Part shown: positions 527 to 49,300 of the stretch, in pieces
Position numbering within the stretch: position 1 is the stretch's first letter
Layout: every line of letters starts with the position of its first letter
DNA from: Magallana gigas
Lineage: Eukaryota
Length of the DNA stretch: 64,000 bases
NCBI RefSeq assembly: GCF_963853765.1
Contig: NC_088858.1
Coordinates: 30,132,001-30,196,000 of the forward strand
Direction: 5' to 3'
The notes under the pieces: model-generated
Databases searched by the model: none
What the model was told of the DNA's origin: nothing
What the model saw: only the letters and a program-made list of their open reading frames with translations
Program-made: the position numbers and the translations under genes

Positions 527-594
527 AAACTGTGATCACATTTCCGCATTTTTATACACATGATCACAGAAATATTTCATAAACCAATACTTAC

Positions 595-822
595 CAAATG
601 TATAGTGATCAAGTGACTTGTTAAATGTAAACTTTTCAATGCCAATAGTGAACAGATAATTGCAGGGATCTACAGAGAGATAAGCACTGAAGGACATGTT
701 GAGGTCTGGGACATTGACACAGCAGTGAAATCCTGTACAAAGTGGTGGAAGATAACAGGAAACCAGTGTGGCTGATCTGGCATCTAGAGTACGATTCACC
801 AAATCCACATCCAACTGACACA
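595..822 (-). CDS. Repeat unit R30, first exon only; gene continues beyond the left edge
   Basis: xCQLDVDL...SCYLPPLCTGFHCCVNVPDLNMSFSAYLSVDPCNYLFTIGIEKFTFNKSLDHYTFG|gtaagt. Confidence 0.8.
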
Positions 823-3800
823 CTGAAAAAGTGTTATAAAATGTGCACATGTTGGTAAAACATATCTTTACTAAAGGTTCATTATTAAAAAACAAAACTT
901 AATCTAAAGCCATCAGGGACGGACAATTACCGAATTTTAGGTCTGCTATCAAAGAAGATGTGATAATTAGCATAAAAAGGCACAATCTCATTGATACTTA
1001 TAGTAAACCACTTACTTTGTGATAAATAATAAGAGCTTAATGTGCTGTTGAGAACTCCTTCTGTAGAGTTTGTATAGTTCTGGCCAATCAAACTTTGGTC
1101 AAAGAACATGCCAACACCTCTCTTACATGGAATTGGATTCATATATTGTGCAATGTCCAAATATTCCAATAATAAATTTTTTGCCCATTCAGGAAACTGT
1201 ACCAATGTTGGAACTTTTTCATCACTTTTCCATTTTGATAATGAAAAGCCTATAATTCCATAATCAAAAAACAATTAAAAATATTGAAAAACTTATTAAG
1301 GCAAAAATAATTCATCACTGACTAAAATTTATGCAAAGATTAAAAATGTACCTGTATTAACATCCCAAGGACATCTTCGTTTTGGCAGTAAAGTATTTTC
1401 GAAAATAGAAATCCTCCTTATACAGTCTTCATGCGCTTCAAAGCACAGACTGAGATTCATGTTGACAAGAAAAAACCGTTCTCCTTGGAAATTGTCTATT
1501 ATGAAGCTATAAACATACGAGAATTAAAGAGATTTTCATTTGTCTTCATGAAATATTGTGAACTTTACACAGATAATTGTACAAATGATTGTGAATTATA
1601 ACATTAACCCTATTGCAAAAGTTGTATACTGTGGTCTCATTAATATTCAAGGGTATCAATTTTCGTGGATAAAGTGAAAATCACAGTTTCAAGGATACGT
1701 AAATTTGTGGCCAATGACCCTATCAATACAAAAAGTTAATAGAAATTGCATTTCAATGAATACTTAATTTCGACGATCATCTTAATAACGAAATACACGA
1801 AAATTGGTATTTAACAAATATTGATGAAACCACAGTACTACATGTATGCATATACATATTATCTTACTCTATTCTTACTACTCCAGCAAGCCAGTGCCTT
1901 TCTTTCTGACCTACAAAGAAAAGAGAAAAAATTACAACAATTAATATGTATTATATGAAAACTAAGCAAATCAATTATTGAAAATTTTTGCTGTACCCCA
2001 TCTATAATGAGCAAGTGAAATATTCCTGTTGAATTTTCCTATACCAACTTGGAGTTCAGAAGTACAGGGATCTATGGTAAGGAAGATTTTTACATTTCTA
2101 GTCAGGTATTCTACCCCAACACAACACTCTATAGATGTGCAGTCCTCCTGAAGGTGACATACTGCTCCAGATATGTTTGGTTTAATCACCATCTTTGCAC
2201 AAGCTGCAAATGTATTTTAAAAAATCAAGTCTTTGACTATTATGATGATTTTGGGTATCGAGACAAGGTAAAACTGAATAAATTTTAAACCTTTATCAGG
2301 GCACAAAAGCCCAAATTCATATATAGTCTCAGCAAGTCTTACATGATGTCCAGCCATTAACTGCATTTGAAGATTGACTACATGACTGGGAGAGTAAATA
2401 CTGTGATATTGAAAGTTCATCCATCAGTTGAGACACTTTGTAGTCAGTCTGCATCAGGTCTGACACATTCCCAATACTATTATTTGCTAACCAGGTGGTC
2501 AGAGAGAAGTCTATAAAACAGAAGACAAAAATACATAAATCAATAATGGTTATGTTAAAAAAATTGTTCCATAACAATGCTAGTAGTTCTCAAAATGGCA
2601 AAGATAAATACACCTTTAATTAATAGAAAATGTCACTATACAAATTTGTTTTCCCTTGGACTGAAATGTCACACTTTCATTGGTTTAAACATAGCACGTG
2701 GTTGCCTCATATATCTCTATATTTGTTCTGTGAGGAATAATATTAGGCAATATGGCCGTCATTGGCCGACGCTTCGCTTACTCATTTCGACATTTCATAG
2801 TATTTAATACATAAACCGCATGCCCTAAGTTTTTAAAGTATTTGGAGTAGTTGCCCTTTAAAATTCTTTAAAATTAGAGTAGTTGCCCTTAGAATATTTA
2901 TGTCACATTGTTTTGTCTAGAGCAGAACAAAATGGCAGCGACGAAATTTGCTCAAATCTCTGCAGAGAAAGGGAGAAAACATTTAAAATTGAAAAGCAAC
3001 AAAACATTGTAAGTAAACATGAGTGAATCAAAGATTTTTAAAGAGTATTTGAAAGGTGAGATTGAGATGGAAAATTTTGAAGAGTTTAAATGAGTTAACT
3101 TGGACGAGATGTAGGAATATTGTAAATGGCTTTACGTAGATCATCGCTATTTGTGAATAAATATGTCGCTTGATAGTCCTCGGGAAAAACAAAACACTTA
3201 TTATGTTAGTTCCTGACTCACTACAGAAAATATATTGGGTTGATCCATCTCATAGACGGCTCGGCTCCGCCTCGCCATCTATGAGATAGATCAACACAAT
3301 ATATTTCCATAGTGAGTCAGTAACTAACCTAATAAGTAATAATATTGGTATCTTTGCATTTCGTAGATAAATATTTACATTAAGTGTATACTTCCCCTTA
3401 TGTTTGCATTGGAAATCTGGGACGTTCAATTTTCTATAAATACACTCTGCTAATCCATGCGCCATGAACACAGATAAAAACGTCATTACATGTTTTGGGT
3501 ATATTTATTTTTGTAAGATTAAATGAAACTTTCAATCTTACATAACCAATTTGATATGTACTTTTGAAAAACTATTGTCTAGAGCAAAACAAATATATAA
3601 TATATATAATATATATCTACTCCTTAGTAAAAAAGTTTTTTTATCCGCAAAGTTTCTGGCACATATTTTTTTGTCGCAAAAGCTAACTAAATAATATGTT
3701 AATATGGCTGTTCCATGTATGTTTCATATCCCTGACTAAGAGCACAAATAATGGCTTTAGAGCGGCGATACACAAATTTCATATAAATAGACATCAGTAT

Positions 3801-5939
3801 GAAAATATAAATAAAAGCATCGAATGCTTATTTTTTGATGTAAGCTAACACGCGATATGATAATTTGTCTGCACCACTTGGTTTGTCATAGGACCGACGA
3901 CATTCAAAAATAAGCATTCAATGCTTAAAACAATCATTTTTCACTGTTGATTTTAATTATTATTTGCAAAGTGTACAAAAACGAAGCAATATTGCTTACT
4001 AGGGTCAACAAAACTTTGATTCCATGTGCACAATCCTTTTGGAAAAACTGCCCTGTTCAGAATTGTGTATGTGGTACCAGTGTCACACTGTGGTGGTCTT
4101 GTTTCGTAGCAGTCCATAGCTTCTAGTGACACCAAGTATGATCTATCTTCAAACAAGTCTTCAATGGTGTATCTGAAAGTCACCATACAGTGAGTGCACT
4201 TGTATATTATATACGTTCTTCCGTGGTTAAAATAATTGCAACAATTCCTGCTGGACTAAAGGGGCCCTTCTTTAGCCAGATGATCTGCAAATTTACCAGT
4301 ATCTAATATCCCTTACGATTTTTAAAGCGCTAACCATAGCGCTTTATTGTCGTTAGACTTCTACTTCAGGTGCATCGAATAACTGCCTCCTATGAGCAGA
4401 GGTTTACATAATTTAAACTGGTTAGGGAACCAGTTTTAGGAGTTTGTGCACATAACTGCACGGGCTAATGTGAATCTAATGTACGGGCTATTGTGAATTT
4501 AATGTACGGGGCTTACATACATCACTGCATGGACGTCCACGCAATGATGCGGAAATATATAGTGCGTGTACAAAAGCTGAAATGTTACATACATGTACAT
4601 ATATCTGTTATATACATACTGAAGCTGAGCTATCGCTTTTCAGTACTATCAGTACTTTGATTTCCTCAAGATTTTACCTTCATGCTCCCTGTACAATACC
4701 CTTTCATGTAACCACATATATGTGAAATTAATATATAGTCATTAGTCATAACCACCCCCCCCTCCAGCAGCTTACCTGACTCTATATATTCCAAGCAAAC
4801 TGAACTCCTCAGGTTCTCCTAGAAAGAAACACCCAATTCATATAAAAACTTCAAATTGAAATATTTCATCAAATTGAAATATCATACTTAAATAATAAAT
4901 ACCCAATCTTAAATCATGTAGTGCCTTTGTATAAAACACTTTTTCGATCTGAATAAAAAGGCTCTGGGAACAGTAGTCTATGCTGAAATGTACTTGATAA
5001 TTTCTTCTTAACTCTGGAGATTTGACACAGCACTGCACACCATTACAAGTTGAGAGCATGACACATTTAACATCAGCATGCAGGTTAGGCAAATTCATGA
5101 TCATTCCACAACCTAAGGAATGAAAGTTAGTTAATATTTATCAATAATTTGTACTTTGTAATTAAGAAAGTCAGAAAAATTGTCTTCTTCAAAAACACAT
5201 TCGTTACCACTGGTCCATCCATTGGCAGCTGTAGTTGAATAGATACCAACAGATGTATTACACATTGGGTTATCTGTATAGCCAGCCAGGCCTGTTTCAT
5301 CCATAAGTTGCAACAAATATTCATCTGGAATACTTAGTTTAGCAGTTGGAAGATGTCGATCCACTTTCCATGAAAACAGTGAGAATCCTTAAAAATAAAT
5401 AGATTAAGTTTATTTAAAATCAAGTTGATTAAAGTCTCCTTTAAAGAAGGTGAACTCCTAATTTTATATATAGTAAAATCAATAATCCAATAGAAAAATG
5501 GATGCCCACAAAATATGCACCTTTGATATTGTAATCCATTGACCATTCACAGACATCTTTTGGTATCAAGGAATCTTTAAAGAGGACGTAGAACACTGTG
5601 TCATTTCTACTGGACTCATAACTGTGGCTGATGTTCATGTTCAACAAGTATTTTCTATCATTGAAGAAGTTCACCAAAGAAAAGCTGTTGAAATAAAAAA
5701 TTAAAACAAAAGCATAATAAATATTACCACAAATTTATTATCAGACGAAGTTCTTTTTCATATACTAGTACATTTATTCACAAATTTAAGATTTATGTAA
5801 AAGATTACCTCAATTCATATATCCCATAGAAATCCATTTTCACCACTTCACCTAATAAATTGAGCATACATCATAATTGTGTTTGAAGAGATTGAAATTA
5901 AGCTTTAAATAAAAATATAATTCAATGAAATATACAGTC

Positions 5940-6003
<64 letters not shown>

Positions 6004-6113
6004 AAATCACAAAAGTATTTTCTCAGTGTCCGGTAAAAATATAATAAAAGAAAAAAAGCAACACTAACTGCAAAGCAAATTATGTTTTGCAGTTAGTGTT
6101 GCTTTTTTTCTTT

Positions 6114-6178
<65 letters not shown>

Positions 6179-9100
6179 TGAATGACATACCCCATGTAAA
6201 ATTGAGGAGACTGATGTTGAATTGCAGTTTTTCTATCTCCAACTTCAAGGTGAATTTACAAGGATCAATTTTGACTACCGTTTCTATGTTTCGTTTGAGT
6301 ACTTTGTCTTCCACACAGCAAGAGGTGGTTGTACAAGTGTCAGACAGATAACAGTTGATGAGGTCTGAGTCTGTGAACTGACTGATCCCAGACACCTTTC
6401 CACATTCTGAATAAAAAATCATATTTCTTTTTCATTTCAGTTTAATTTCGGATTGAAACAAAGTAGGTTTATATTTTCATTAACATTAGATATAAAAACA
6501 CACCATCCTTCCAAAAGTTCCTGTGGGGAAAATAGTTTCCTGCTTGTCTATGACAGGAATCTTTAAGATATTCGGGAATATCAAGAACTTCTTGCAGTAA
6601 AACAATGTCTGAGGCTTTCATCTCTGACTCTGTTATTTGGTTTTCTGCTTTCCATGTTGACAGTGAAAAATCTGCCATTATAAAATAAGATTCAAAATTA
6701 GTGAGTTATACCCAGTATATTTGTTTGACGTACCTGCTAATTCATATGTATTTGCAGATTATAAGGAATATGTTTACGTCTTGCTATCAAAAATACTGTT
6801 TGAAAGGTTTCCTTTTGGTTGAGGAATAGCATACTTTTTTGTACAAAACCAGTAATCAAGCTGCAAGGTTTCTTTGGCAACAGAGAATTTTTGAACACCA
6901 CAGTCTCTAACACACAGGGACCAGAGGATTCCAAACACAGACTGATATTTAGGCTCATTTGGTACTTCCGATCAACTTTCAGGTCATACACTTTATACCT
7001 TTAAAAGATATCAAACTTACACTATTTATCTTTAAAAATAAGTATACACTGTACTGTTCATCCACCAAATCAAATTTTTCAATTTGATAATATTTCAAGA
7101 CAAGCAATAGCTGTTATGATTAAATTTTCAAAACTATCATTTTCTATGTATAATTTGCTGGCATATAGTCGCATTGATTGCATTTTCATTAGGAAAAATG
7201 TGTTTTTAAGTGTAACTTTTTAAAAATAATTGAAAACTCACTGCATCCGAACAACATTGTTGAGGAAGAAACTGTGCTCTTTTCCTAAAACATTATATGC
7301 CGTCATTTATAAGAATATTCAAAATATAAATGAACTTACATACAGTATCAAAATCATTGATTTTATTGAAATAATTTTTACATGTATATTCATATAAAAT
7401 CAGCTCTAATTTATAAATCCAAGGAGTTTTATTCTCACCAAATGTGAAGTCATAGAGTGAGATTTGATGAGCAAAGTTTTCAATCTCCAACAAAATCCTC
7501 TGGTTACAGGGATCTAGTTCTAGGAGCACGCTGATTGACCTGTTGAGTGGAGTGTGTGATGTCACACAGCATTTGACTGATGTACAGGTGGCAGGGATGT
7601 GACAAAGCAGGTCTGTGGGTAGATGTCTGGTCAGCACTGGTAGAGGACAGTCTGTAAAGTGAAGCAACACAACATTAGAACATGATACACACCACTGCAC
7701 TCTCTGTCTTTCTCGTTCATATATTTAATCTAAATCTGGTTAAGCATGATTTTTCACACATTTTTGGTAAGAACATATTTGCAGTGATTAATTTTCATTT
7801 GTAATAAGTCTTGTTGCCTAGAGAAAAGAGAACACTGGTTAGTGAGAATACTTAAACATCCATCAGCAGCTTTTCCTCCTAATGTTTTAAATATCTATTG
7901 TATACATCTTTTGGTTCACAGTACAAACCTGCACTGAGCTACTTAAAACATCTTTTCAACAATATAAAATATTGTAAAATTCCATGTAAATAACAATTAA
8001 ACATGTACTGTAAATTAAAACAGAGCTCCAGCTGAAAACTTGCCTTTTGTCCATCCGTGTGTATTATTTTGGTAAATGATATCAGTTTCCCTACATTGTT
8101 CCCCTTTCATATACTGTGCTATTCCCAAATCTTCAAGAAGTTCTAACTGACCATATTCTGGTAATGGCAACACTGATGAAAAACTGTGATCAGCTAACCA
8201 GCCAGACATTGAAAAACCTACAAAACAAAACAAAAAATCCAAAAGATATGAATATCAAACTAGGTATTGAGTTCCCTACATTGTTAATTTAAAATTTAAA
8301 TGTTATGGATTGTAATGATCAGAAATTGTATAAATTTGAAGTAACTTACTTGGGATGACAAAGTCTGTACTCTTGAATTCACAGACAGGTTTCGGAAACA
8401 TAGTGTTTTGAACAATGTTTTCAGTTAGGGTACAATTGTCTGGTTCATAGCACACACTTATATTGACACTCATCATATAATGTGAGTCACTGACCAAGTC
8501 AAAGATGATGTAACTAAAAGAAAATTTACTCATTAGTACCACATATTTGTACATTTGTACATCAATGATGGTAATAGAAAAAATATATTATGTATTTTTA
8601 CCTAATTCTGTAGACTCCTTGAAGACTGAAATGCTTTTCTTCACCTTTAAATGTGTTTACATAGATTATATAATTACTTGTAATTATAATTCTCGAAAAA
8701 ATAAATAAATATAGTTTTCAACTTTAATAATTTATGATTTAATATAAAGAATTATAAAAATATCAAAATGTTTTATTACCAAATGTAAAGTCCAAGAGAA
8801 ATGATTGTTGTTTTCTGTTCTCTATGCCTACTGAAAATTTTAAATGACAAGAATCTACACCAATGAACCAGTTGAATGTTGTATCCATTTCAGGATCTTC
8901 GGTACAACAGTTGATAGAGGTACAGCTGGAACCCACATAGCAGTAGGTCTTCTTCTTCATGTTGTAAGGTAGACTGCGTATTCTACATGCTAGAAATTCA
9001 AAAAGCACTTTAATGAGTAAATAAAATTGCAGAATGATCTTGTACATTTTATAAACAATAAGGTTTTATGGTATGTTCTAACTTGCAACTTCTTTTAAAT

Positions 9101-12100
9101 AGGATCAGTGCACAATAGCTATAAATTGAGAAAAAATCTATCACCATTGTGTTGATTCCAGCCATTGTATGTGGGCCAGTATGGGGAAACATTTCTTCTA
9201 CACTTAGATGACTTGAGATATCCAGGCAGTTTTAAGGAGTCTTCTACTTTACCCTTCATATAGTTAGGTAAATTGGCACCATAACTGTAACTGTTGTTAA
9301 TTTTCCATGATAAAAGGGAAAAACCTATTAAAAAAGGAATAATTTAAACATGTATCTGTGAAAGCTTAAACAAATTAGTCAGATATTTAACTCTTTCATT
9401 TATTTCCACATTCATAGTTATTTAGAGCGTGTAAAAAGCAACAATAATATTTGAATTGTCGACTGCATATATTAAGACATCTTCTGTGTAACATTAGGTG
9501 GTGTTGGCAACATAAAAATTCTCATTGTTCAGTTTGAAATAAGTGAAAAATCTCAAGACGGGGGTAAATATCATAAAATCGACCAACAATTATATAGCTA
9601 TGATTAAATATAAAAATATGTTATCAAACCTGGTGGCAATAGCTGATCAAACTGGCATTTTCTTTTGGACACAAGGCTGTTGGCAAGTATTGTCTGATTA
9701 GCAATTTCACATGCTTTCGAACTCTCTGTACACAAGCTTACATTTACATTTAACACATATTGGTGTTCATGTTGGAGATTTTTTACATCAAAACTACAAG
9801 GAAATGTAACCAAAGTTAGAATATGATGACAACAATAATCATAATCTCAATCATGGAGAAAAAAAGTTTTTAAAATCTAGAACTTACTCCATGCGTACAA
9901 CTCCTTGTAACCATACACTTTTTGTCATGGCTTAATGAAGAAAAAAATATCAAGTTGAAAATATATGAAACATTCGCAACTAAGCAATTTTTCATAGGCA
10001 TTGTAAAATTTAACATACTCATGCAAATTTTGGATTTGCTATACATACATGTTGACAGCAATTTGTCTGTTTCAAGAGAGATTTCCTCAAATTTCCATTT
10101 ATCAATTCCAACCACTATTTTTGATGTGCAAGGGTCAATTTCTAGGTATGTATGGAAGCTTCTCCCCAAAACTGAGCTTGATATACAACACTCTACTCCT
10201 GAACAATAACTAGGAATATTGCAGGTAAAAGAGCTGGGGAGGATTGGCAATGCAAGGTTGTCTAAGCATTCTGAAAAAAAAATCATCACATGAGCATACA
10301 ATCATATATACGTATCTTAAAAACTTCACTGTAATTCAAAACATTTGAGAACTTTGTAAATTTCCTTTTTTTAAACTTGCCTGATGTCCAACCAGTGCTG
10401 TTTCCATGAACCCAAGATGTGTTACAGTCTGTATCCTTAAACTTTGACAGCTGTAAAACTTCCATTAGATCCTGCAGAGCACTTCCTGTCAGTGGAGTAG
10501 TGTTAGGATATCCATTTTCTGACAGCCAAGTACTGGTAGAGAACCCTTAAAACAAATCATACACATTTACAACACCTTGATTTATGGAATAACATATTTA
10601 ATGAATATGTAATAATAGTTGAATATTTGTTTGCAATTGTTTAAAAATATAACAGACATTAAGTCAAGAAAGGTAAAACCTGGCAGTAAAAGAACATATT
10701 ACATCAATATGTTTGTAGCAATATATTAATTTCAAACAATACATCAAAAGAAATCTTACATGCATAATATACACATCACTTATACATGTATATCAACAAA
10801 CTACACAGATTTTTTCAATTTTACACACTCTGTGAACAATTGTCTCTTACCAGGTATTGTTTCTTCTGCTTTCCAGTTGCAGTAAGGTTGGGATCTGGAC
10901 TTTGGTAATCTTGTATTCGAGAGAACTGTGTATTGTTCACAGTGTAAGGAACTCTCCCAGCAGGAGAGGACGGAGAAGCTGACTAGGTACATGTTGGCAT
11001 TACTCAGGTCCTCAATTGTATATCTGTAGAAAACAGTTTGGGAAGGATATAAATATAACAAAATGAAAGAAAAAGTGAACAAGCTCACATACGCCATGCT
11101 CCCATATTATTGGCAATCCTATAATGAAAGACAGAGTATGCAATAAACACACAAAATGATTTTATTTTAAAAGGGACATAACTCAATAAAAAATAATGAC
11201 ATCAAGACTTCCTGCACATCTATACTTCTGTCTCTATAAAACAACAACAAAATTTTAAATTCGAAAATGCAAAAATTCCCATAAAATTGTAAAATCGGAA
11301 TTTTCTGGTACATATATGTAATATGCACATCCTAAATACCTACAAAGTTTAAACAAAATTCAGTGCAACAGTTTAAGAGGAGCCGCGTTTACTAAACACA
11401 GGACAGAAGGACTGACACACTGACACAATGACTGACTGACGGACGGGTCAAAAACATATCCTTCGCACTTGTTGTGTGATGTATCTTTATGGAAATGGAG
11501 TACAAAATATAAATCCAAATCTATTTTCAATGATGTACATCATATTTACCTGAGATGATATATTCCACTCATAGTAAGCATTTCTTCCTTTCCTATGAAG
11601 AAATTTATTCAATTAAGAAAAGTAATGAATAGCATTTTAAATATTATTTTCTGGATTTCTAAAGATTTTTCAAAATACAAATACATCTATACAAATGTAC
11701 TTTATACAGTGAACGTATACTGTTTAAATCAAACAAATATTTAGTTCTACTTTGAAACTGAAAAATAACAGTCAAAGAACACACCCTTACCCCAGTTAGT
11801 GTATGCACTTGGCTGTATTTCTCTGACAAACTTGTCTATGCCTATCCTTATTTTGTCTTGACAGTAGTTTAGACTGAAGTGAATGGTCACATGTTTCAGC
11901 AAAGGTTCAGAATACAAACAGCACACCACATCTGAACAGGAGTGTCCAAGATTACAGGTGATAGCTCCTCGAATAACAGGAACATTGTTTGGGAGGGATA
12001 CTGGGCAATCTTTTCAAAACAGAAAATAACAGAAATCATTCTAATTCTTTAAATTCCTGATTAAAATTCTCGGAAAAACTGTAAAATGTAGTGGTAAGTT

Positions 12101-15100
12101 GCATTTTTAAAAATCAAAACTAAAAAATGTATTTTTATAGATACATATAAAACCCACCATTAGTCCATCCAGCTGAGGGGGAATTAAACACTCCTGATGA
12201 CCTGTCACATACTTGTGAGGAGTTATACAAATATCCATGCATTCCCAATTCTTCCTCTAGTCTAGCTATGCTATAGTCTTCCATGACTGTGTACTTGTTT
12301 TTTGTTTTCCATGAATTAATTGTGAAATCTAAAAGAAAATTGAAAACAAGTCATCAAATGAGCAACGTATAGCCATTGTATTTTGTAGTGCACATATTTA
12401 GTTTTCTATAATATTCATTTCCAAATAACACCAGAGCTGAAAAAAGATATTTCTTCCTGCTTACTCTTTATTTCTGTTCCTATATTCCACTCACAGCTAG
12501 GTTTTGGTATAAGCGTATCATCAAGTACAGACACCTCTTCACAAGGCAGCCCATTCTCCATACAAACCATAAACTTTAGACTAATTCGCAAAGATTCTGC
12601 TCCTGGGAGGTCTACTATCTTAAACCTAAAATATTTCCAATAACATCATTAAATTAAGCTTGTCCATCAGAATACTACACAACTGTTATATCGAACACAT
12701 GTCATTGGTAAAATTACATGTTATCTTAGCATACCTGTTAAAAATTAAATTTTTTATTTAATTGATCTATGTAAAAAAGAAACTGCAATTTAAATAATTT
12801 TCTTTCGCATAGTGCAGTAATGATAATTGGATTGATGTAAAGGCACAACATACACCCTTAGTTATAAAAGGTATAAAAGGAATCATTATTTCCTCATTTC
12901 TTTATACCTTAGTCTATAGATTCCCTTCATCCAGTAGTCCTGCCACTCATTGAACTTAAAGTCATACATGGTGGTTGGCTGTACAACAAATCTATCAATC
13001 CCATATTGAATTGTCCATCGACATGAGTCAATTGATAAATAAAACTGGAGTGACTGTGGTTTTAGTTTGGTTACATCCATACAGCAGTTAATACTGGTAC
13101 AACTGGATGTCATGTGGCAGGTTACATAGGAAGGTAATGATTTTAGTCCTGGGTTCAATGTTGAGGGACATTCTGCATCGGGATGTATACAAAACTTAAT
13201 TAATACATAGAATAATATCTGACCATGTTAACCTTAAGGTGGTATGGGACATCTGTCGATATTATGTGGATTAAAGTACTATATAATTGAAAAACTTTCA
13301 CCAGTTTAGAATTTTCAAATTTTACATAATTTAACCAAAAAGTAGCTTTTAAAAATATTTGAAAAGGTAGAAATTGGAAAACCCCCAGCGGGATTCGAAC
13401 TCATGACTTACAGGTTCGTAGTAAACCCTCTAACCCACTGCGCTACGGAGTTAGGTGACCATTTTTGGAAAGAAACTACTTATATAATTACACTTTATTT
13501 TATTGTTTATTTCGATAAACAATACGTCATAACATGGAAGTGTCCCATACCACTTTAAGTCATGTTTAAAGAATGTTTTTCTTCTCAAGCATAAGTGGCT
13601 GCACTGAACTTTATAATTACCATTTTTCCATCCATTCAATGTAGGCAGGTAATGAGCATCTGATCTATTACAGGAAGGATGCAATATGTAGCTGGAAACA
13701 CCCAGATAGTCGTTCAAATAAACAAAGTCTTTTTCAGTCAATTTGTTGGGAACGAGGCCATTTTCTCTAGTGTACTTTGACAAGGAGAATCCTTAAAAAA
13801 GATTTTTAAAAATTTAGTAATCTTAATGATACCTTATTTCTTATATCTTGTGATTCAGCACAAGTCTGTTAGTTTGACCACATAGAAAAAGTAGTGACCT
13901 ACAATAGTACATTATTCATGCGCTACTTTGACCTCTTGACCCATAATGATTTTATGCAGGAATAACAGCGGATTGCGCAAATACTGTTATATACGAGAAA
14001 ACATTTGCAAGTGTAAATATTTTTTTAACATTATCTACAAAAACATATACAATATACAGCTGTACCTGGTTTTTCAAAGGAAAGCCTTCCTGTGCATTTT
14101 CTTTTTGGAATCATTGTATTTTGGAATACATCTGCTATAAACTGACAGGGTTTGTACCTCTCCCAACACAAGGATACTTTAAGGTCCATTAGAAACATAC
14201 TTTCAGCTAAGAGGTCATAGACTTTGTAACTGAAATTAGAATGTGAAATTCAATAATCTCTTTCTTTCTCTATCTCTCTCTTGATAAGTTAAAACAAAAC
14301 ATACATGTAGTATACTTCAAAGATCATTTAAAGAAACAAAATAAATCTGTTTACAACATGTATCAAAAGCCAAATATCAAAGATTAAAAAAATCGATTTG
14401 ACTGTTAAAAAACCCATCATGAAATCGTGGAAATTCTTCAAAATGTACTTTCAAAATGTTACTTGAAAAAACCCTATATCAGGTATATCAATATCAGTCA
14501 TAAATTTACATCGAGCAAAAATAAGTGGGATAAAAGTGAAAATATATCAATCAACTCACTCAATGCGTATTAATCCAAACAGGTAGTATTTCTGTTCTTC
14601 ACCTTATGGAACAGATAGATCAACTTTAATCAAAGGTGTACTTAGTTTTGTTAATCTGACGATATGATCGATTTATTAAAACTGTATTTATACATTGACT
14701 CATTAGAAAATGTGACTTTCATCTAGTTGTACTTGAATGAGTAATGTCATAATTTTCATAGTTTGATAAATTGTAAAGCAGATTCAACAAAACTTTTACT
14801 CAATATTTTGATTTAAAAACCCCCATCAAAGATATCAATCATACATTTGATAACATAATATATATTTTCTTTTTAAGTATTTCTTCTCTCATACCCCATG
14901 ATAAATCTGTAAAAGGTATGATTGCTTGTAGATTTTCCACTCCTAAATTAAGTGTCCTGGTACAAGGATCAATATCCATGTTGACTTGGAATGTGGAGTT
15001 TGTTAATTCTGCTTCTACACAACAAGTTACTTTGTTACAGTTAGTGTCCAGTTCACAGAACAGAGGGAAGGAGGACAAGGCAGACACATTGCTTTTGTCA

Positions 15101-34242: not shown

Positions 34243-34339
<97 letters not shown>

Positions 34340-37300: not shown

Positions 37301-40300
37301 TAAAATGCAGCATTCCATAAAAAAAAACCCCAAAACAAATCAATATTCAATTTCCAGAAAAAGCCCCCTTAAAACATTTTGATAGCCTTTATTCTTTTAA
37401 ATACAAAATACATTTTACACTCAAATCCACATATATTTGATCTGCTTACAAGTACATGTAATATTGATGTCCAGATTCACAAAATCATGATGAGAATCAA
37501 AAATTCAAATACAACGAGGAAACACTTACGCAAATTTGATTAAACCTTCTGCGACAGAAACTATAATTTCATCTCCCCAAACGTAGTCAATTAATTTCAT
37601 CTTTTTCTGCATGTTTTCAAAACCGAAACTGAGTTCCAATTTGTCCAGATCCAGATTCAGATACAGATGTAATCCCAGACCTAGACCTGGGATCTCAGCA
37701 CAACACTCTATTCCAGTACAGTAGTCAGGGATATGGCAGGACATTGGATCAGGAATCTTGGAGGGCAAAAATGCTATGGTTTTGGGACACGCTGAAGAAA
37801 AGAAATTATTTCTTCATGCAAGTTTAGTTTTCAAATGTCATCTGCCTTATTGCTTATTAAATTTATGAACAAATTCATCTTTCTACGTATACATAATGAG
37901 GAATTAATTCAAATGTGTGGAAGGTCAATTTTTTCACTTGTTGGAATTTTTTTCTGTAATTGATTATGCATGTACTAATGCATAAATGTACATCTTAATA
38001 TATAGATAAAGCCATTTCTGATTTTTAAAAAATGCACTTATAATTTTTAAACTATAATTCTGATAACTGTAAGATGTTAAAATATTGAACTAAACATCAA
38101 TTGCTAGCTGCTGCTTAGTTTTTAATAATTGGCTCTTTAAAAATGTAAAATAAAGTTTTTTTCTATCGCATTAATTGGAAAGTCAAGCATATAGAATCAA
38201 CAATTATGAGTCTTACTATTGTGCATTCCCTCCACAGATGGACTGTAGGGTGATCGTGTTCTATCGCATTTAGTTTTCTGGAAGAAATTTGTCAGGTTCA
38301 GTTCTTCCAGCAGTAACATTTTTGCTCCTTCTCCCAATTGCTCTCCAATGTCCAAGGCTTTATCTTTCAACCATTCATTGATAGAAAAGTCTGAAATAAT
38401 ATGATGAACAATGTGAACAGAAGATGACAGTGAATTTACATTTAATCAAATAGAATTGAATATATCTAAATAAGTAGTTTCTTTTTAAACAGATTAGGTC
38501 TTTTATTTCATTTGTTTCCTTCCACAATTAATCGGTTCGTAATCTCATTGATTACTAAAAGCACTTATTTGTTCATGGGGTTGAGGAGATAGAATTAAAA
38601 AGTACATGATTGTACTGTGTGTGTATCTATTTTGAAGTCATACTTTTGAAGTTGACTAGTGCTCTTTGATCACAGATAGGAACTTCTTGATTGTGAAGTA
38701 AATGCAACCCTTCATCACTTGGAATGCAATACTTCTTTCCATCTATAGGTAAGCAAATCATCACTTTTACATCCACAATAAAACCTTTGTTTTCCTCCAT
38801 TTGGTCTATATTGTATCTAAAGAGATGAACATTTTCGACTTTAAAACTTCAAAAATCCAAACAAGCATAATTATCAAAAATAGCAATATGCATTTCTCAA
38901 TTTACTTACATGATTTCAATAGGTGCTGGATTTCCTGAGCCAAGTGTAAGCACTTTTTGCTTGCCTGTATGATTACCAATGATGATAAAATGCATTTAAT
39001 TTTTTTTTTAATCAAACAATAGTCTTCAAAGCAATGTGAAGCTTTATTGTCATTATTCCACAGTCATGTAAATGCTTCTAACTAGTCAATAGATTCAATG
39101 GGACACTTACCAAACTCGTACTGCAGCAGACGTGTCTTCAACAAAGTACGCGTTCCAAATCCTATATCAATGGCAAAATCACAAGGGTCAATTTTGAACC
39201 AGAAAGGAATATTCTTGGTAATTCTGATATTTCCCAAGGGAATTGTAAATGTTAAATCTAAGCTGCAGTCAATTCCCCAACAATTTGGTGGCTGCACACA
39301 TTTAACCATGTGTCGAATGGCTGCAGGCAAATACTTGTGGAAGTCAAAAGAAATTGGGCAATCTATAAATGAAATTCAACATAAATTAAAAAAAAACTGG
39401 TATTTGATTCCATTGCATAAAGTTATTCAAGTTCATTTTGATTACTAGAATAAAATTATTTGTTCATTAAGAAGTAATACTCATGAAATATCACATGATA
39501 AAAAAAAATAAACTCAATAGGTTTGAGCTGCTAAAATGAGGTCTTAACCCAACTTACTAGAAGGCCCTGGTGGTAACTGCACTGGTCCAGATTTAAATAC
39601 CATCTGAAATACAATACTTTTATGTAAAACATGCCTATGTTGATAACAAAATTCAAACTAAAATGTCCTTGGTGGTCTAATGCCCAAAAGCCAAAAACTA
39701 TTACTTTAAGGGGAATACCTCATTTTTTTAAAATTTGAAATATGAACTTTGAGATTCCTGTTTTCAAAGTTTGCAATAAAAATAAATAACCCGCCTGTAA
39801 TTGGCCAGAAATATAAAAATTAGTGTATTTGATCCATGATGGTCTCCTTTTGATTTTTACTATTCTGATAGTAAAGTGACCTTGGTCAATGACCACGGAT
39901 CAAGTAACAACACACTATCAGTCATTAGGCAATCAGGCACATGTATGAACATCTGATATGTCTTCTTTTAAAAGTTACAGAACAAACATGAAATAAGAAT
40001 ATAAAAGACAGACAGACTAAAAAGAATTGAAAAACAGAGTGACAAATTGATATGGTGATTCCACTCTCCCTCCCCTTCAAAAGAAAATTAAGTAGCTTTT
40101 TTTCAGATTGTATGGTATAAAACATAAAAAAAGAAATAACCAAGATAAGCAGATAAACAGACTAAAATTAATGCCCTAGCTCTTTTCGATAATCAACAAG
40201 ACATAAATGACATTTAGAAAAATACCTAAACTGTCTAATCTCTTAATGTATAGTTCTCATTCAAACATTTAAAACGAGGGGTTGTTATATTATTTCAAGG

Positions 40301-43300
40301 CAAACATCCTCAATTATGCCAGTTGAAAGATGACTATTATACATGGGTTTTTTTTCAACATTGATGAAGCATGGCTTATTATTTTAGATTGTAAACCTCA
40401 ATTAAACTAACATTTAACAAAAATATACAATATTTAATTTCAGCTTACGTCCAGGTCAAATTTTTTCAACACCAATTCAAAGGCTTCCTCTGTCATCTTT
40501 CCTCCAATGGTTTGAAGCAGACCACTGAAAGTTCCTCCACCTTCAAACAAATATTTGTGTGTTGAATTCTTAAAATAATATTAATTCTTGATTACTGAAT
40601 ATTATTGTATTTCTTTTATATTCTTTATAATACCTGGAAGAACAAACTCTCCACACAATGGAATGGGTATTTTGATATCCTGCAAGAAGTACTCATCCAA
40701 GAAGCAATCTCCTGGACATATTTTCAGCCCAAAACTCAATATGAATACACCTTCATCAACATTCCGATCAATTTTATACCTAGTAATAAAAGTATTTTGA
40801 GTGAAAAATCAAGTATTACATGGTAACCCTTATAGTTTAACGTGGCCTTTCTTCAATTATTTTCTTTTATTTCCTCTAACTCCGCAATGTAAAGATTTCC
40901 ACTATATACATTGTAATTCCAAACTTACTTTTTTACGTTAAATGATATTTTTTTCTATTTAAGGAATTAATTTAATTTTGACGTATGTTATACGATATAA
41001 CATAACTTGGGACAGTTTACGCTTTTTTATAAACCGCGAAATTCATTCCCTATAATTTAATATTCAAAACAAATCTAACTCTCCGTACCATTTTCATGCT
41101 TTTGTTTTAACCGTAAACGACATTTTTAACTACCCGCGCAGTAGTACAACATCCTTAGTAACAAGTGACCCAGATTAGAACGAAGCGAGGGGTGGCGGCC
41201 ATATTTGAATTTGGTGTTTGGACGCTGGTTCGCATCTTCACAGTTTAGTTCTCAAAGTTAAAGGTACAGTTGTCAAAAGTTGAATTAGACATCAAGTGTG
41301 AAAGTGTGGATATTGCAGGGGCAGGCCTCTTGGGTTTGTTGATGAGCATGCGTCAAATTCATGTTAGGAGATCGACTCGGATATTGGGAGCGGTGTGTGA
41401 AATGCACGAGCATGCTGAAAATGGATTGTTTGTACTTTGTCGCTTTACAGTAAGTACATGTACACCAAGAGTTTCGCACATTTGTTTTCTCTGAGCCATC
41501 GAGATTGTAACTGTAAACAGAGGATTCATGTTTACAGTCATGATTTATATACCGACATCGATTATTTAACCTGCTATCAGTCTATAGTAATTAGGGGGAA
41601 CTAGCTCAATCAGATGGAAATCTGCTCGCCAAATGTTTTTTACGAAAAGAGGCATCAGAATATTAAAACCCCACTAAAATACCACCATAAACCTAGATAG
41701 CGTAAAAGTAGAGCGCTCTTAAAAGAGAGATTTGGGTGCAATTCCCATTCTGGCTTAAAATTTGGTGTTTTTACTATGATATAAAATTTACTGATATTTG
41801 TTTATTCATCCTTTTCATACCTTGAAAAAGATTCAACTCCCCCTCAAGTTTTGTGCTCCTTTTCGTAAAAATTCAATTCAATCCATTTGTGAGATATTTT
41901 CAAAATCATTTTTTATTTTTTCAATTTGGAAAGATTGAAGCATATTTTTTTTTTAATTTATAGTATGCAAATGAAAAGAGATAAACTTGGTCATATTCTA
42001 TTTATTTACTATTATATACACATGCATGCAATTGTACATGTAAGGTTTACATGTAAAAAAAAAAAAAGTAGTTCCGGATAGATGTTGTCAAGTGGGTGTG
42101 TCCCCATACCAAGGTATGTTATAAAATATAATATCCCTCCATCTGTATCAGCCAATGAAATGAGGCGTTACAACCAAAATTAAATTATTTGGATATATAG
42201 TTTCAATCGAAAATATATACAATGACTTCATTAATTAAGGAGTCTCGACAGAGAATGTTTCAATCAAACGATTTCCTTTAATTTTTTTCAGTGAAAGGTC
42301 AGACATTTTATATAGGATTATATAGAGAAAATGGGTTATCATTTTCAATTTCATATGTAAAAAAAATAAAAACAAGATATTCTTTTAATTTTCAGCGTAT
42401 AACGTATAAGTAAACTTTTTGCCAATTAAAACGAAATTGAACAGATAGTTTTTATGCTATCCGCCCTCATATTTTGGTCCTATAAACGTGTCTTGCCAGT
42501 TATTTTACATATAGAATTGTATACGATTTTAGATAAATTTGTAATAGATAAAAAAAACACCTTTCTTCCACTCACACAGAAAATGAAATGATCGCGCAAA
42601 TTTTTTTTTTTCGTAAATCAAAAGTTCATTTTTAAATTGACTCTGCAATAAAAAAATGCACGACGTTTGTTTTTGGCAATTGTTACTTCAAAGTCTCAAC
42701 TGACCTCATCGTAAGACGTGAATAACCTCGTGAATGACCTCTGACGTGAATAAAGTCGATTTTGAAGAAGCAGTGGAATTATTAAAATAAATCTTAACAT
42801 TATCCTTAGGATTCATTTTATTAAAAATATTTTTTTATGATTAGTAATTTATTTTAAATAAAAACGTTACATGATAACCTATATATCTAATCATTTTACT
42901 CTGTATTTGCGTTTTACTATAGTTTTGCGCATTACCACAGGGTGCGAAATTTCAAACCCGCGACCGACATTAATAGGCATTTAATTGCATTTTGGATGTT
43001 ATCCAAAAATTATTTTATAAATATTCTTAACTTCAAAAATAGCCTGGTACTGGACCCTGAATTTTTTTGGGCATCAACAGGTTTAAATGCAAAAAAGGAA
43101 GAATTTATTTACATGTATTAATTAAGGTCAAGATCTAGCAAATGATTCCATAGTGTATTTTTGGTGCTAGAACCATTATTACGTCATAATTGATTTTAAG
43201 AATCTTTTCCCCGTACTTTACGGCTTTAAAGGAATTATGTAGAAAATTAAACAATTTCTTGACATTCTGTGTTAAATCATGGGAAAAGTAATCCCGGTAC

Positions 43301-46300: not shown

Positions 46301-49300
46301 AGTAAAAGGACAGCTACACAGTATTTAAACTGACTGAACAAATATAAAAATATAAGTGGACGATTTTTAAACAAAAACTTCAATGCAGCAATATTAAAGT
46401 ACCAGTAGACTAAATGTGAACCATTTGCTTAATAAAAACAGGAATCTTTGATTTAAATGTTAAAACTTTTTTCGCATGGTTCCATTCATATTGTCTACAT
46501 TACCATATACATGTACATATATCTAGTAAAAAGTAAGTTCTTACATTTTGGCCAAATGATAGATCCATCAGGTTTACATGTGGGAATTGGTAGGATAGCA
46601 TTGTCTAACAAATTTACAAAAAGAACACAGTCACTCATGTCTTCCTGACTACAAAATCCCACACCAAATGTTGCCAGTGTTGCCTCTTCTCCTTTAATGA
46701 TACTGTATCTGTTGATGATAAAATTTTATAATGTGATGATTCTAACTTTCAGGTTCTATATATGTTATAAGTTCATCTGAAAGTACTGATGAAATCCTAC
46801 CAAAGTCGAATAGTATATCACAAGATAATTCATTTTGTGATTTATTTCTCAATTACTTACTTAACAACTACTTCTATGCCACCCATGAGGTCAATCTTAA
46901 TTCCAGTTTTCAGCTCGTTTTCAAAACCTAGAAGAAAAACGTATTTAGTCCTAATTGAAATTTACTTTTTCATACAGAGAATGGACTTGAAAAATTCATA
47001 TCTGTTAAAAAAATTAAACTGACCATCGAAATTCAGACTGCCTGTGATCTTGATTGTGTAGTTGTACTTGTCGAATGCCATAACAAACTGCATTGGATTA
47101 GCACAAGGGTCAAGTCTAGCCCAAAACTTGAAGACTTTCAGAAACATTGCAAGTTTTACGTTAATGCAACACTCCACTCCTAAGCAGTAGCTGTCAAATG
47201 TGCAGTAAATATTCCTTGGCATAGTAAAGGACATCAGAGGACAGCCTGCATTGAAGTACATTTCATAAGAAATGCAAAACACAATATTGTGTAACAGATG
47301 AAGTTAAGTTTTAGAAAAGATAATACATATGTAATACTACAAAATTTAACACTCTTGGACCACAGTCTATTTACATACTTTGTTCAAGCTCCAAAAGTCT
47401 TGCAAGCATTTCTTCTCTAGAGCCTGAAGCATCTTTTCCTCTTTCTATCAGTTCATTCATAAGCTGGTCTTCAGTCATCTCATGAGGGCTAACACACGGT
47501 TTGTTCTCTATAAGTTCCTACAAAGATTTTTTTTATAACATTGTTGTAATTACTTGATTTGAAGAAAATTTGAAGAAAATATAATTTCAAATAGAAATAT
47601 TAAGTGATATATAAATTCAGATTCTAGCTGTACATGTACATAAGAACAAATATAATTATTTGATAATTATATAATAAATTATGGCGCAACATATTCATAC
47701 CTTAATGGTTATCATCACTTTGGCCATTGCCTGTTTACTTTTGTCCATTCCAAGCTTATCCAAAAACTCAATAATTGTGCCAAACTTAAGTCGCCGGATG
47801 TTGAACTTTTGCAAAAATTTGTCAGCTGCTTTCAATAGTTTTGCAAAAAATCCTAGAAAAAATTCTTTCGTCAGATTTTTATCTAGGTCTACCCTTCATC
47901 GTAAAAGTTAAATACAACAGGCATGCAAATCAATGTTATTGTTACTCTATTACTACTGACCTTTTTTTTCATTGGATGGAGCAACTGTTGTAGTAGTAGT
48001 AACTGGCTTGTTGTTCCCTACTAAGGCTGGACACATATCCTCTTGATCATCAATACCAAAGATGTCAGAATTTGGAGGCTGTGTTTGAACAGCATTGAAC
48101 GTACTGTCTTGATCGTCTGTCAAAATATATCTTACCTTAAAGCTTTAATTCTTTTATAGAGGCTTGAATTGAATTATGTTAAATATGCACAAATGTAAAC
48201 GATTTGACATGAATTTTAACAAAACAATCACATAATAAATATTTATAATTGTAAGAACCTTTAATATCGTCACTGAAGTCTGGGTCAAAAGAAGAAGGTA
48301 GCTCTGGTATTTCAGCAGCGAAATCCGTGTTTTCCAGTTTAGGGTCATTATTTTCTGGTTGCTGACCACCTAACCCAACAATAAATCCTGCAGCGATTGT
48401 TTGATCCTAATACAATAAGACAAAAATGTTGATGTGGTAAAATGAAGCTTAGAAACACAACAGGAACATTCATGTAATGTGTAACCTTACGTGTGCAAAT
48501 AATATTATCAAATAATCTACATGGAAACATGAAGACCTTGCTATATCTTAAAATAAACTTTTCCTAGAGAAAAAGAACTTGATGGTCACAAATATTTCTT
48601 GAAATCCCCAAAACTCTCGATAAAAATATTGAAGATGGCTAAACTGCATATTTATAATAACTGTCCCGTTTATCATTGGTAAATTGCAAAAGAAAATAGC
48701 TCCAAATAAAAGTTTGTTTACAACGATGTTAAAGTCAAAAATAAAAACAAACGTGCTTAAAATATGTTCTTTGAAGAGAACTTTAATATCAAATACTTTA
48801 TTATAAACTTTGCTATTTCACTAAATATCCTGGGGGTATTTTGTGCGATATTTCATTTTTTTTCACGTTTATCATCAATTTTTATTTCAAAACGAAAGGA
48901 AATACATGAAATATATTATATTATACAAAACTGGAAAAATAAACATGATAAGCACAGATTACCAAAATGTCCACTCAATTTGCAATATGCAAATAACCAC
49001 TTTTAATTGTTAGTAATTTCGTATTTATTTTCATCAGTGAAGAAACCATCCACACGAATTATTCACGATAAAGTTCCCAAGTACATACCATTAGTACCAA
49101 TTTGTAATCATCACATTCCTGCTTCCATTCAGGCATTGTTACAAGTTCAAATTCTAGATACTTTGTAGGGTCTATATAATCATCATCTTTATGAAAAGCG
49201 AGGTGTATGTGATTTTTACATATTGAATGCTTGGAGGTTCCAAGTTTTTGACCAGCCTGAAACTGAAATTAAACAGCATCTGTGTATGATGATACTTTTA

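Follow-up and report, generated by a model that had tools for sequence, protein, structure and literature searches.

A tandem array of expressed, ten-cysteine units

The minus strand of the window (the whole 64,000-nucleotide stretch of Magallana gigas contig NC_088858.1 analysed here) carries 30 tandem units of about 197 aa with ten cysteines at positions 569-47249, and all 30 are genuine, expressed copies of a disulfide-rich module that has no name (Table 1). On balance, we favour the reading that a single, very large and expressed oyster gene encodes these units as the repeats of a stalk, each with a β-sandwich distantly similar to DUF4773 and FAIM. A unit HMM of 201 positions, derived exclusively from the units of the Potamilus (freshwater mussel) protein P0001, gave 85 matches on the minus strand of the window and none on the plus strand (i-E<0.01). 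The matches comprise 30 A pieces (HMM 1-86), followed by B (87-142) and C (138-200) pieces, in order, with the first A piece at 47249-47007 and the last at 820-569; an earlier note on this DNA had placed the array at 595-47245, in agreement with this mapping. The array continues for about five units beyond window position 1, to about -7359, giving a total of about 35, and at least five such arrays are present on three chromosomes of the oyster genome. Pairwise identity among the units of this array is only about 20-40%. Units 1-3 are atypical: SAP motifs precede unit 1 and separate it from unit 2, and neither of these two units has a recognisable C exon.

Each unit is split into three or four exons. 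Spliced RNA contigs of three studies, together with stranded poly-A reads of a fourth run that fall on one strand only, define 12 GT..AG introns. For units 6-9, whose exons were set by RNA joints, the spliced frame spans 705 codons with no stops, versus 51 stops in each of the other two frames, which bears out the earlier claim that the units are all open.

The ten-cysteine pattern described previously was recovered: the ten columns (HMM 1, 19, 25, 30, 31, 50, 108, 115, 132 and 183) hold Cys in 26-30 of the 30 window units, the count for C1 being taken from the A-exon alignment. The motifs CTGVxCC, DPC, GIEK, WG, GVVRI, LNLSxC, LPKxxCxW, FSLxxW, LLExLGIxxYL and NGW likewise recur in the HMM consensus, and conserved positions are mainly cysteines and residues of the hydrophobic core. 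Cysteines are lost in pairs across 309 units (phi 0.81, 0.85 and 0.61), which points to C2-C4, C6-C9 and C7-C8 as predicted disulfides. N-glycosylation sequons number about 2.5 per unit, at conserved positions. Their main hot spot is column 104, directly before C7, occupied in 9 of the 30 units in the window and in 95 of the 309 from all species; the earlier note had also seen sequons to be frequent there.

Table 1. Mapped features of the array and of the adjoining domains; positions refer to the window
Feature	Positions	Strand	Evidence
Array of 30 tandem ~197-aa 10-Cys units	569..47249	-	Unit HMM matches and per-unit table
Exon scheme of the units: A = C1-C6, up to GVVRI; B = C7-C9; C = FSLxxW...C10...NGW	569..47249	-	
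Unit 7 exon A, 256 nt, 3-exon form including GVVRM strand	33065..33320	-	RNA joints 32979/33065 and 33320/33446, CT..AC ends; in open spliced frame
Unit 7 exon B, 158 nt	32822..32979	-	RNA joints; HMM 87-139
Unit 7 exon C, 165 nt	32570..32734	-	RNA joints; HMM 127-188
Unit 8 exon A, 220 nt, 4-exon form, ending just past xYG motif	32137..32356	-	RNA joints
Unit 8 mini-exon, 42 nt, strand FWMKDVVRIE	31959..32000	-	RNA joints 31846/31959 and 32000/32137; translation
Unit 8 exon B	31694..31846	-	RNA joints and unit HMM
Unit 8 exon C	31389..31576	-	RNA joints and unit HMM
Unit 9 exon A	31043..31266	-	RNA joints and unit HMM
Unit 9 mini-exon, 41 nt	30781..30821	-	RNA joints and open spliced frame
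Unit 9 exon B	29929..30086	-	RNA joints and unit HMM
Unit 9 exon C	29178..29351	-	RNA joints and unit HMM
Exons linking lipid-transfer head to M23-like domain (60714-60908, 56836-56988, 56573-56752, introns between)	56573..60908	-	Collinear with P0004 820-1004
M23-like domain exon with HxxxD motif (KHVGVD)	52525..52713	-	Collinear with P0004 1005-1062; translation
M23-like domain, exons 49384-49560 and 49095-49292, intron between	49095..49560	-	Collinear with P0004 1110-1174, 48.5% identity
SAP-like exon just upstream of unit 1	47374..47517	-	Pfam SAP E 4.4e-4, 20.3 bits; collinear with P0004 1316-1361
SAP exon between units 1 and 2	45465..45662	-	Pfam SAP (PF02037) E 2.2e-5, 24.4 bits

The units form the middle of a giant membrane-anchored protein

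The array belongs to a minus-strand gene of about 128 kb that runs from about window position +94,130 to about -34,300, an extent determined from tblastn matches that are collinear with residues 11-1603 of Potamilus P0004 and with the C-terminal part of Pinctada P0176. The encoded protein is roughly 12,000 residues long and membrane-anchored, with the units as its long middle part. It begins with a signal peptide and a lipid-transfer head of the vitellogenin type (LLTP, large lipid transfer protein), followed in order by an M23-like domain, SAP motifs and the approximately 35 units; behind the array lie about 3,400 aa that align collinearly with the C-terminal region in relatives, then one transmembrane helix and a final tail of about 300 aa. 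The first exon encodes the signal peptide followed by the canonical LLTP start FKPGYEYVY, and a late exon encodes EGF-like repeats, read from the translation, ahead of the transmembrane helix with RYKIKKR. In relatives, the C-terminal region has Pfam matches to FN3, PAN or cadherin-like domains, and full-length models start with a signal peptide and contain, 100-260 aa ahead of the C-terminus, a transmembrane-like segment.

The head is assigned to the LLTP superfamily by an N-terminal Vitellogenin_N domain after the signal peptide, which Pfam detects above its cut-off in the orthologs P0004, P0174 and P0155 (E 1e-8 to 1e-14) and which extends to the oyster gene by collinearity of its +94064 to +72610 segment, outside the window, with the N-termini of these proteins. 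Peptidase_M23 reaches 17-27 bits in orthologs, versus a Pfam cut-off of 28.7; the window M23-like exons alone gave no Pfam match, and their translation contains the sequences KHVGVD (HxxxD) and NHIHLAF (HxH, in exon 49095-49292), which have the form of the metal and catalytic motifs of M23/LECT2-like domains. With a SAP (PF02037) cut-off of 23.9 bits, exon 45465-45662 lies above and exon 47374-47517 below it, and orthologs have SAP at the same positions with 27-39 bits. The Vitellogenin_N, SAP and M23 matches are spread among the relatives P0004, P0155, P0022, P0174 and P0181. The proposed extracellular location of the module is supported by the signal peptide and single C-terminal transmembrane helix, the paired loss of cysteines and the conserved sequon positions. 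By contrast, the description of the module as stand-alone was not supported, as it was found only as a repeat of giant multidomain proteins.

These relatives, with 9-35 units per giant protein, are all uncharacterised (bivalves, gastropods, a flatworm, a sea star and amphioxus), and the layout recurs at least partly in other bivalves, gastropods, a sea star and amphioxus. Window units 16-29 pair one-to-one with consecutive units in a protein of the pearl oyster, units 1-3 keep their collinear arrangement in every mollusc examined, and whole modules are recognisable in amphioxus and the sea star, in line with the old expansion under constraint postulated earlier. A literature search found no paper on the module or its host protein, and none joining LLTP, M23, SAP and a 10-Cys repeat array.

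Predicted fold and nearest families

As the earlier note had stated, the module cannot be assigned to a named family by sequence. Pfam returned no family for the window exon pieces or for the all-unit protein P0001 (2806 aa), no family matched consistently among 137 units at E<=10, and a profile search of PDB sequences with the unit gave no match. VWD, SEA, CUB, EGF, ZP-N and other Cys-rich extracellular repeats were absent from the Pfam results for units, as was FAIM, and VWD and ZP-N structures reached only Z 3.4-4.3 against the unit model. The Pfam HMM of DUF4773 (PF15998; gathering score 27 bits) matched 0 of 137 units at E<=10 and found four true and four weak loci in the oyster genome, none of them in the arrays. 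In an hhalign comparison of unit profile A2 with a shallow alignment of four oyster DUF4773 sequences (Neff 1.8), the probability was 0.14 (E 0.4), with the alignment limited to TGVxCC...WG versus TSCGCC...WGG. No strong match to a described family emerged, the DUF4773 and FAIM signals being weak to moderate and structural only.

The AlphaFold model of one unit, from a mussel rather than the oyster (pLDDT 89.5, pTM 0.64), predicts a nine-stranded β-sandwich of about 125 aa (exons A and B), followed by a small helical part of about 70 aa (exon C), whose packing against the sandwich is uncertain because of the pTM of 0.64. DUF4773, an uncharacterised secreted Cys-rich domain of arthropods, molluscs, cnidarians and other animals that three papers mention, each only in passing, is the nearest named family. 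Foldseek against AFDB placed several DUF4773 clusters near the unit model (E about 1e-3, TM 0.34-0.41), a DUF4773 cluster in the ESM Atlas reached TM 0.45 (108 residues aligned, rmsd 3.1), and language-model features ranked DUF4773 nearest, with scores of 0.84 and 0.82. The nine predicted strands of the unit (14-17, 24-31, 36-45, 50-55, 58-63, 73-77, 81-90, 95-105 and 111-124) have nearly the same positions and order as those of the DUF4773 model (14-18, 21-30, 33-44, 49-56, 59-67, 74-76, 85-96, 100-111 and 115-127), so that fold and strand topology agree, both sides being predictions. Both contain roughly ten cysteines, and their first hairpins share a similar C...C...CC cluster. Among solved structures, the N-terminal domain of human FAIM is the best match for both models: compared with PDB entries 3mx7 and 2kw1, the unit sandwich gave Z 6.9 for FAIM-NTD (88 of 90 residues, rmsd 3.5, model residues 20-123) and 4.4 for FAIM-CTD, with the next unrelated structures at Z <=4.8, and the DUF4773 model gave 9.3 and 7.2. 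However, sequence identity of the unit to FAIM is 3-8%, and a Z of 6.9 falls below the tool's reliable level, since values under 8 can reflect a common arrangement and 6.9 is within the range common for unrelated folds. FAIM (Fas apoptosis inhibitory molecule) resides in the cytosol and is not known to contain disulfides.

Could this resemblance be convergence on a common β-sandwich, with the module representing a fold and family that are genuinely new and have no relationship to DUF4773 or FAIM? We regard this as rather unlikely. It would agree with the absence of a sequence signal in Pfam, the PDB profile search and hhalign, with a VIA Z of 6.9 that is typical of models without a true relative, with a Foldseek search of the PDB that gave the unit model nothing better than E 0.04 and TM 0.25, and with a helical part containing C10 that has no counterpart in DUF4773. 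It is less easily reconciled with DUF4773 being the first named family by AFDB Foldseek, ESM Atlas shape and language-model features, which are not fully independent of one another, or with the near-identical strand count, order and lengths. The top solved matches are common to both models, and the Cys spacing of the first hairpin is alike (C-x5-C-x4-CC in the unit versus CxC-x4-CxCC in DUF4773). Twelve of the 30 AFDB matches of the unit model recur in the list of the DUF4773 model, whose own top 30 do not include the unit family. Judged by these models, a very remote relationship of the sandwich to DUF4773, with a FAIM-type fold, is most likely, and the suggestion of a possibly new fold was not upheld for the first 125 or so residues: the sandwich is probably not a new fold. 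Sandwich and helical appendix together would constitute a family without a name. The unit differs from DUF4773 in the placement of its second-half cysteines, in the added helical part and in its occurrence, 9-35 times in giant proteins versus once in small proteins of 150-300 aa.

Proposed role of the units

By analogy with other giant surface proteins, we propose that the units act as a stalk in which rigid, disulfide-locked and N-glycosylated beads would be strung together to hold the lipid-binding/M23 head far from the cell surface, at a roughly estimated 100-200 nm. The array would then serve as a spacer and glycocalyx element, comparable to the SEA-repeat region of MUC16 or to Ig/FN3 strings. 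MUC16, a type I membrane protein, exceeds 10,000 aa and has dozens of divergent, glycosylated SEA modules of about 150-200 aa, each encoded by a few exons, and its ectodomain is thought to form an extended surface barrier. The oyster protein may be likened to it in its giant size and an ectodomain dominated by modular repeats. In contrast, the SEA module is unrelated to the unit in fold and sequence (a single unit gave a noise-level SEA_Gpr126 match, E 0.05), the examined part of the oyster protein lacks mucin-type Ser/Thr-rich repeats, and mucins have no LLTP/M23 head.

The strong divergence between units, each of which has been kept in place, fits specialised binding modules as well as a plain spacer. 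A tentative alternative is that the units are chiefly lectin-like or ligand-binding recognition modules, each with a specificity of its own, for microbes, food particles, gametes or matrix, and the protein a multivalent surface receptor instead of a spacer. Units that are only about 20-40% identical nevertheless keep their positions between oyster and pearl oyster, so that every unit is individually constrained; the presence of at least five arrays on three chromosomes matches a pattern often seen among the immune and recognition gene families of bivalves, and the head has candidate binding domains (LLTP and M23-like). However, neither the unit nor DUF4773 nor the FAIM fold has a known binding site, ligand or conserved surface patch, Pfam gave no lectin family, and conservation concentrated on cysteines and core residues is expected of a scaffold. 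Within the stalk that we prefer, some units probably bear binding sites of their own, because each has retained an individual sequence over hundreds of millions of years.

The vitellogenin-type domain at the start of the protein and the long antiparallel strands of the units would also suit an array that carries lipid, extending the lipid-binding surface of the LLTP head in the manner of the amphipathic β-sheets of apolipoprotein B. We consider this very improbable: the predicted sandwich is closed around a hydrophobic core and is not an open amphipathic sheet, each unit has ten cysteines that are lost in pairs and conserved N-glycan sites, the protein is membrane-anchored, and lipid-binding folds appeared only in weak PDB rows (TM about 0.2). 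The likeness to LLTPs such as vitellogenin, apolipoprotein B/apolipophorin and MTP, namely Vitellogenin_N and a helical HEAT-like part at the N-terminus of the orthologs, concerns the gene and not the unit. To our knowledge, LLTPs are secreted or ER-luminal, and none is membrane-anchored or combined with M23, SAP or a 10-Cys repeat array.

Implications

The module of about 200 aa occurs in hundreds of copies per bivalve genome and extends from molluscs to amphioxus and sea stars, and neither Pfam nor InterPro lists it under a name. A name would correct how many 'hypothetical' proteins of 5,000-12,000 aa are annotated. Gene models of the relatives are often fragmented or mislabelled, and one Mytilus fragment is labelled 'TDRD9 helicase'. 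For DUF4773, the comparison would provide a first structural placement, as a predicted FAIM-like sandwich. More speculatively, and as a possibility that we would not yet favour, the module might found a hitherto undescribed, bilaterian-wide class of giant type I membrane proteins in which an LLTP and M23-type head is tethered to the cell surface by a stalk whose modules, up to about 35 in number, are conserved one by one, each being more than a spacer and having its own ligand-binding surface; we know of no membrane-anchored LLTP described so far. The host protein is unusual in placing a lipid-transfer head, otherwise a feature of yolk and lipoprotein carriers, at the end of a proposed membrane-anchored stalk, and therefore raises the question of lipid sensing or capture at the cell surface in suspension feeders.

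The repeat array and its transcripts

The window (G000:C6:30132001-30196000) is AT-rich (32% G+C), and a bacterial-style ORF listing holds only exon-sized ORFs, which identifies an animal gene. One DUF4773 gene of the genome departs by a single residue, across about 100 aa, from a Crassostrea/Magallana gigas protein, and the RNA runs matching the window carry an oyster label, so the DNA comes from this oyster or a very close species. The motifs described in the earlier note were found in stop-free segments of the minus strand, in strict A-B-C order. A six-frame search of the window with a unit HMM of 201 positions, built only from units of the freshwater-mussel protein P0001 (Potamilus), gave 85 matches at i-E < 0.01. 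Every one is on the minus strand, the plus strand having none, and by HMM position they group as A (1-86), B (87-142) and C (138-200). The A pieces reproduce the repeat count and the coordinates of the earlier note (table), and the array extends about five units further, below window position 1. The ten cysteine columns each keep their cysteine in 26-30 of the 30 window units. N-glycosylation sequons average about 2.5 per unit; their hot spots, directly before C7 and after GIEK, are shared between the window and 309 units of other species. (TA)n-type microsatellites lie in introns directly after A exons (34234-34344 and ~6100-6180) and translate as 'YIYIYI' in the ORF list; the stretch 34234-34344 was left out of the read search as a repeat.

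The exons of 29100-34600 are covered by RNA contigs from three studies and, in a fourth run, by raw stranded poly-A reads. About 0.3 of the words sampled from this stretch occur in the RNA, which fits an exon share of about one third, and the stranded first mates map to the plus strand throughout, as expected of a minus-strand mRNA. Twelve RNA joints have CT..AC ends on the plus strand, that is, GT..AG on the minus strand. The thirteenth (33996/34111), with TA..CA ends and two extra letters (CG) between its sides, is probably due to a slightly misplaced joint or to a polymorphism, not to a true non-canonical intron. According to these joints, units occur in a 3-exon form (exons of ~256, 158 and 165-174 nt) and in a 4-exon form with an extra 41-42-nt mini-exon encoding the 'GVVRI' beta-strand. 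The mini-exons were missed by the ORF-based reading, and gene predictors are likely to miss them too. When the RNA-defined exons of units 6-9 are joined, a 705-codon open frame results, with 51 stops in each of the two other frames; the three complete units within it score 166-187 bits with the mussel HMM.

Features of the host gene and of related oyster loci (window positions; numbers with a plus or minus sign lie outside the window)
Feature	Position	Strand	Details
Upstream gene part	~+94130 to +72600 (outside window)		Signal peptide and vitellogenin-type head
First coding exon	~+94130 to +93912 (outside window)	minus	Signal peptide, then FKPGYEYVY
M23/LECT2-like exons	52525-52713, 49095-49560	minus	Motifs KHVGVD (HxxxD) and NHIHLAF (HxH)
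SAP-like exons	47374-47517, 45465-45662	minus	Before unit 1; between units 1 and 2
Unit array	47249 down to 569	minus	30 A pieces, unit HMM
Mini-exons, 4-exon form	30781-30821, 31959-32000	minus	41-42 nt, each one beta-strand
Downstream gene part	-7400 to -34300 (outside window)		~3,400 aa, FN3/EGF-like, transmembrane helix, tail
Late exon	-31553 to -31879		EGF-like repeats, then hydrophobic helix WMVALIAVLVVVAVVALIVFAVV, then RYKIKKR
Further unit arrays	G000:C9:2.70-2.77 Mb, C9:2.99-3.04 Mb, C3:27.63-27.67 Mb, C3:28.07-28.13 Mb
Oyster DUF4773 loci (L007-L010)	G000:C8:36.62 Mb, C5:31.57 Mb, C10:1.36 Mb		Model maadea5ad857f

Distribution and age of the units

A profile of 29 window A exons, searched against 1.84 billion proteins, matched 885 proteins at E <= 0.001, 34 of them at E <= 1e-30, and all named matches are uncharacterised proteins. 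Relatives occur in bivalves (Potamilus, Sinanodonta, Mytilus, Mya, Mercenaria, Ruditapes, Pinctada and Solemya), gastropods (Patella and Haliotis), the flatworm Macrostomum, the sea star Asterias and amphioxus. Since amphioxus units align over HMM 10-188, the whole module is held in common, beyond the cysteine knot. One fragment made of units, from Mytilus galloprovincialis (VDH95761.1), is annotated as 'ATP-dependent RNA helicase TDRD9', a label that is probably an annotation error or the product of a gene-model fusion. In the literature, we found nothing on the module, the domain combination, the giant relatives (searched by RefSeq locus names) or membrane-bound large lipid transfer proteins.

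The A exons of the window were compared one by one with the giant relatives. Units 16-29 find their best matches in the Pinctada protein P0176 at residues 155, 358, 556, 753, 957, 1154, 1361, (2165), 1757, 1955, 2164, 2375, 2554 and 2751; apart from 2165, each step advances by one unit. Units 9-12, 14-15 and 17-20 follow the same stepwise order along P0177, a further giant relative, and units 1-3 are collinear in all molluscs tested. In the oyster genome itself (564 Mb, 29 contigs), at least four more unit arrays lie on two other chromosomes, and window unit 7 shares 58-72% identity with single units of these paralogous arrays but at most 43% with its own neighbours. Taken together, the unit-by-unit collinearity and the closer kinship of unit 7 to paralogous arrays argue that the units expanded before oyster and pearl oyster split, and that they have since been kept individually, free of concerted evolution. 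The 'old expansion under purifying selection' proposed from the sequence alone is thereby supported. Identities of up to 72% between paralogous-array units and unit 7 further suggest that whole-gene duplications came after the units had diverged. Some paralogous-array matches contain stop codons, for which introns or decay are possible explanations.

Probable relationship of the unit to DUF4773 and FAIM

By sequence, the module can be assigned to no named family, in line with the earlier note: Pfam was blank for single exon pieces of the window, no family was matched consistently by the units, and a profile search of PDB sequences returned a chance match only (E 1). The possibility that the unit's helical part is SAP-like was set aside; SAP does not appear among the 25 families listed of the 39 that 137 units matched at E <= 10. 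Comparison by hhalign with DUF4773, an uncharacterised cysteine-rich Pfam family (PF15998), was not significant with a shallow profile of oyster DUF4773 sequences only, and the Pfam DUF4773 HMM found no unit. Across 309 units, cysteines are lost in pairs (phi of 0.81 for C2-C4, 0.85 for C6-C9 and 0.61 for C7-C8), while loss of C3, C5 or C10 is very rare; such paired loss is the pattern that would be expected for real disulfides of a secreted domain.

For structural comparison, 137 full units were aligned and one unit, from Potamilus rather than the oyster (P0004:2398-2593), was folded with AlphaFold (mean pLDDT 89.5, pTM 0.64); window units reach 187 bits with the HMM of this family. The model has nine beta-strands within residues 14-124, followed by helices at 141-147 and 158-167. 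Foldseek against the PDB gave only beta-barrel or meander matches at TM <= 0.25 (such as nitrobindin, PUR and Whirly), which we judged to be noise, and methyltransferases listed when the ESM Atlas was searched by shape (TM 0.31-0.36, rmsd > 4) were dismissed as unrelated. An exhaustive aligner ranked the N-terminal domain of human FAIM first (Z 6.9, 88/90 residues aligned) and its C-terminal domain third (Z 4.4). Among AFDB clusters, several of DUF4773 come next after the family's own members (E ~1e-3); the ESM Atlas holds a DUF4773 cluster at TM 0.45 to the unit model, and language-model features place DUF4773 clusters at 0.84 and 0.82, with 183 and 180 features in common.

As a cross-check, an oyster DUF4773 domain was folded (pLDDT 76.3), and its nine strands lie at positions near those of the unit model. 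Its best solved match is again the N-terminal domain of human FAIM (Z 9.3, 90/90 residues, rmsd 2.8), with the C-terminal domain at Z 7.2, and on these models DUF4773 looks FAIM-like, apparently its first structural placement. Twelve of the AFDB matches listed for the unit model recur in the list for the DUF4773 model; the unit family is absent among the best 30 AFDB matches of the latter. The cysteines of the first hairpin are similar (C-x5-C-x4-CC in the unit, CxC-x4-CxCC in DUF4773), whereas the later cysteines of the unit are placed otherwise. These later cysteines, the unit family's absence among those 30 matches and the negative HMM and hhalign results speak against homology. We consider it fairly likely that the sandwich of the unit is a very distant domain of DUF4773/FAIM type. 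The earlier suggestion of a possibly new fold is not supported for the sandwich, and we class the module as an extracellular tandem beta-sandwich repeat, probably of this type. The 200-aa module as a whole, sandwich and helical part together, is an unnamed family of its own.

Host gene and proposed role

Upstream of the array, the exons follow Potamilus P0004 and amphioxus P0155 collinearly; both proteins have Vitellogenin_N plus a HEAT-like part, SAP and a weak match to Peptidase_M23. The sequence FKPGYEYVY in the first coding exon is the usual start of a lipid-transfer domain. The M23 Pfam scores of the orthologs are just below the cut-off; since the HxxxD and HxH motifs are kept, the M23/LECT2-like domain might be an active metallopeptidase. 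The placement of SAP is identical in the mussel, abalone, sea-star and amphioxus relatives. The SAP motif is normally a nuclear DNA/RNA-binding module; here, the motifs fall in the extracellular part of the protein. The part downstream of the array is collinear with Pinctada P0176 and amphioxus P0008, and the corresponding C-terminal regions of relatives match FN3, PAN, Laminin_G_3 and cadherin-like domains. A basic, proline-rich ORF of 300 codons comes after the transmembrane-helix exon, and full-length relatives likewise start with a signal peptide and have one transmembrane-like segment, placed 100-260 aa from the C-terminus. From the first coding exon to the tail, the gene spans ~128 kb, and its product would be a type I membrane protein, estimated at roughly 12,000 aa by summing the parts.

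The units sit between a distal head and the membrane anchor; together with their number, disulfides and glycan sites and their compact predicted fold, all observed or modelled, this suggests a structural role. We propose that the units form a rigid, protease-resistant, glycosylated string that would project the lipid-transfer/M23 head away from the cell surface, a role that may be comparable to that of the SEA-repeat region of MUC16. The main rival, binding specific to single units, is left some room, as each unit is conserved individually. The idea of a lipid belt, with the units as apoB-like amphipathic sheets, was set aside. To our knowledge, no membrane-anchored lipid-transfer protein has been described. 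The host protein, which would belong to the large lipid transfer proteins and yet be anchored in the membrane, is more surprising than the module it carries.
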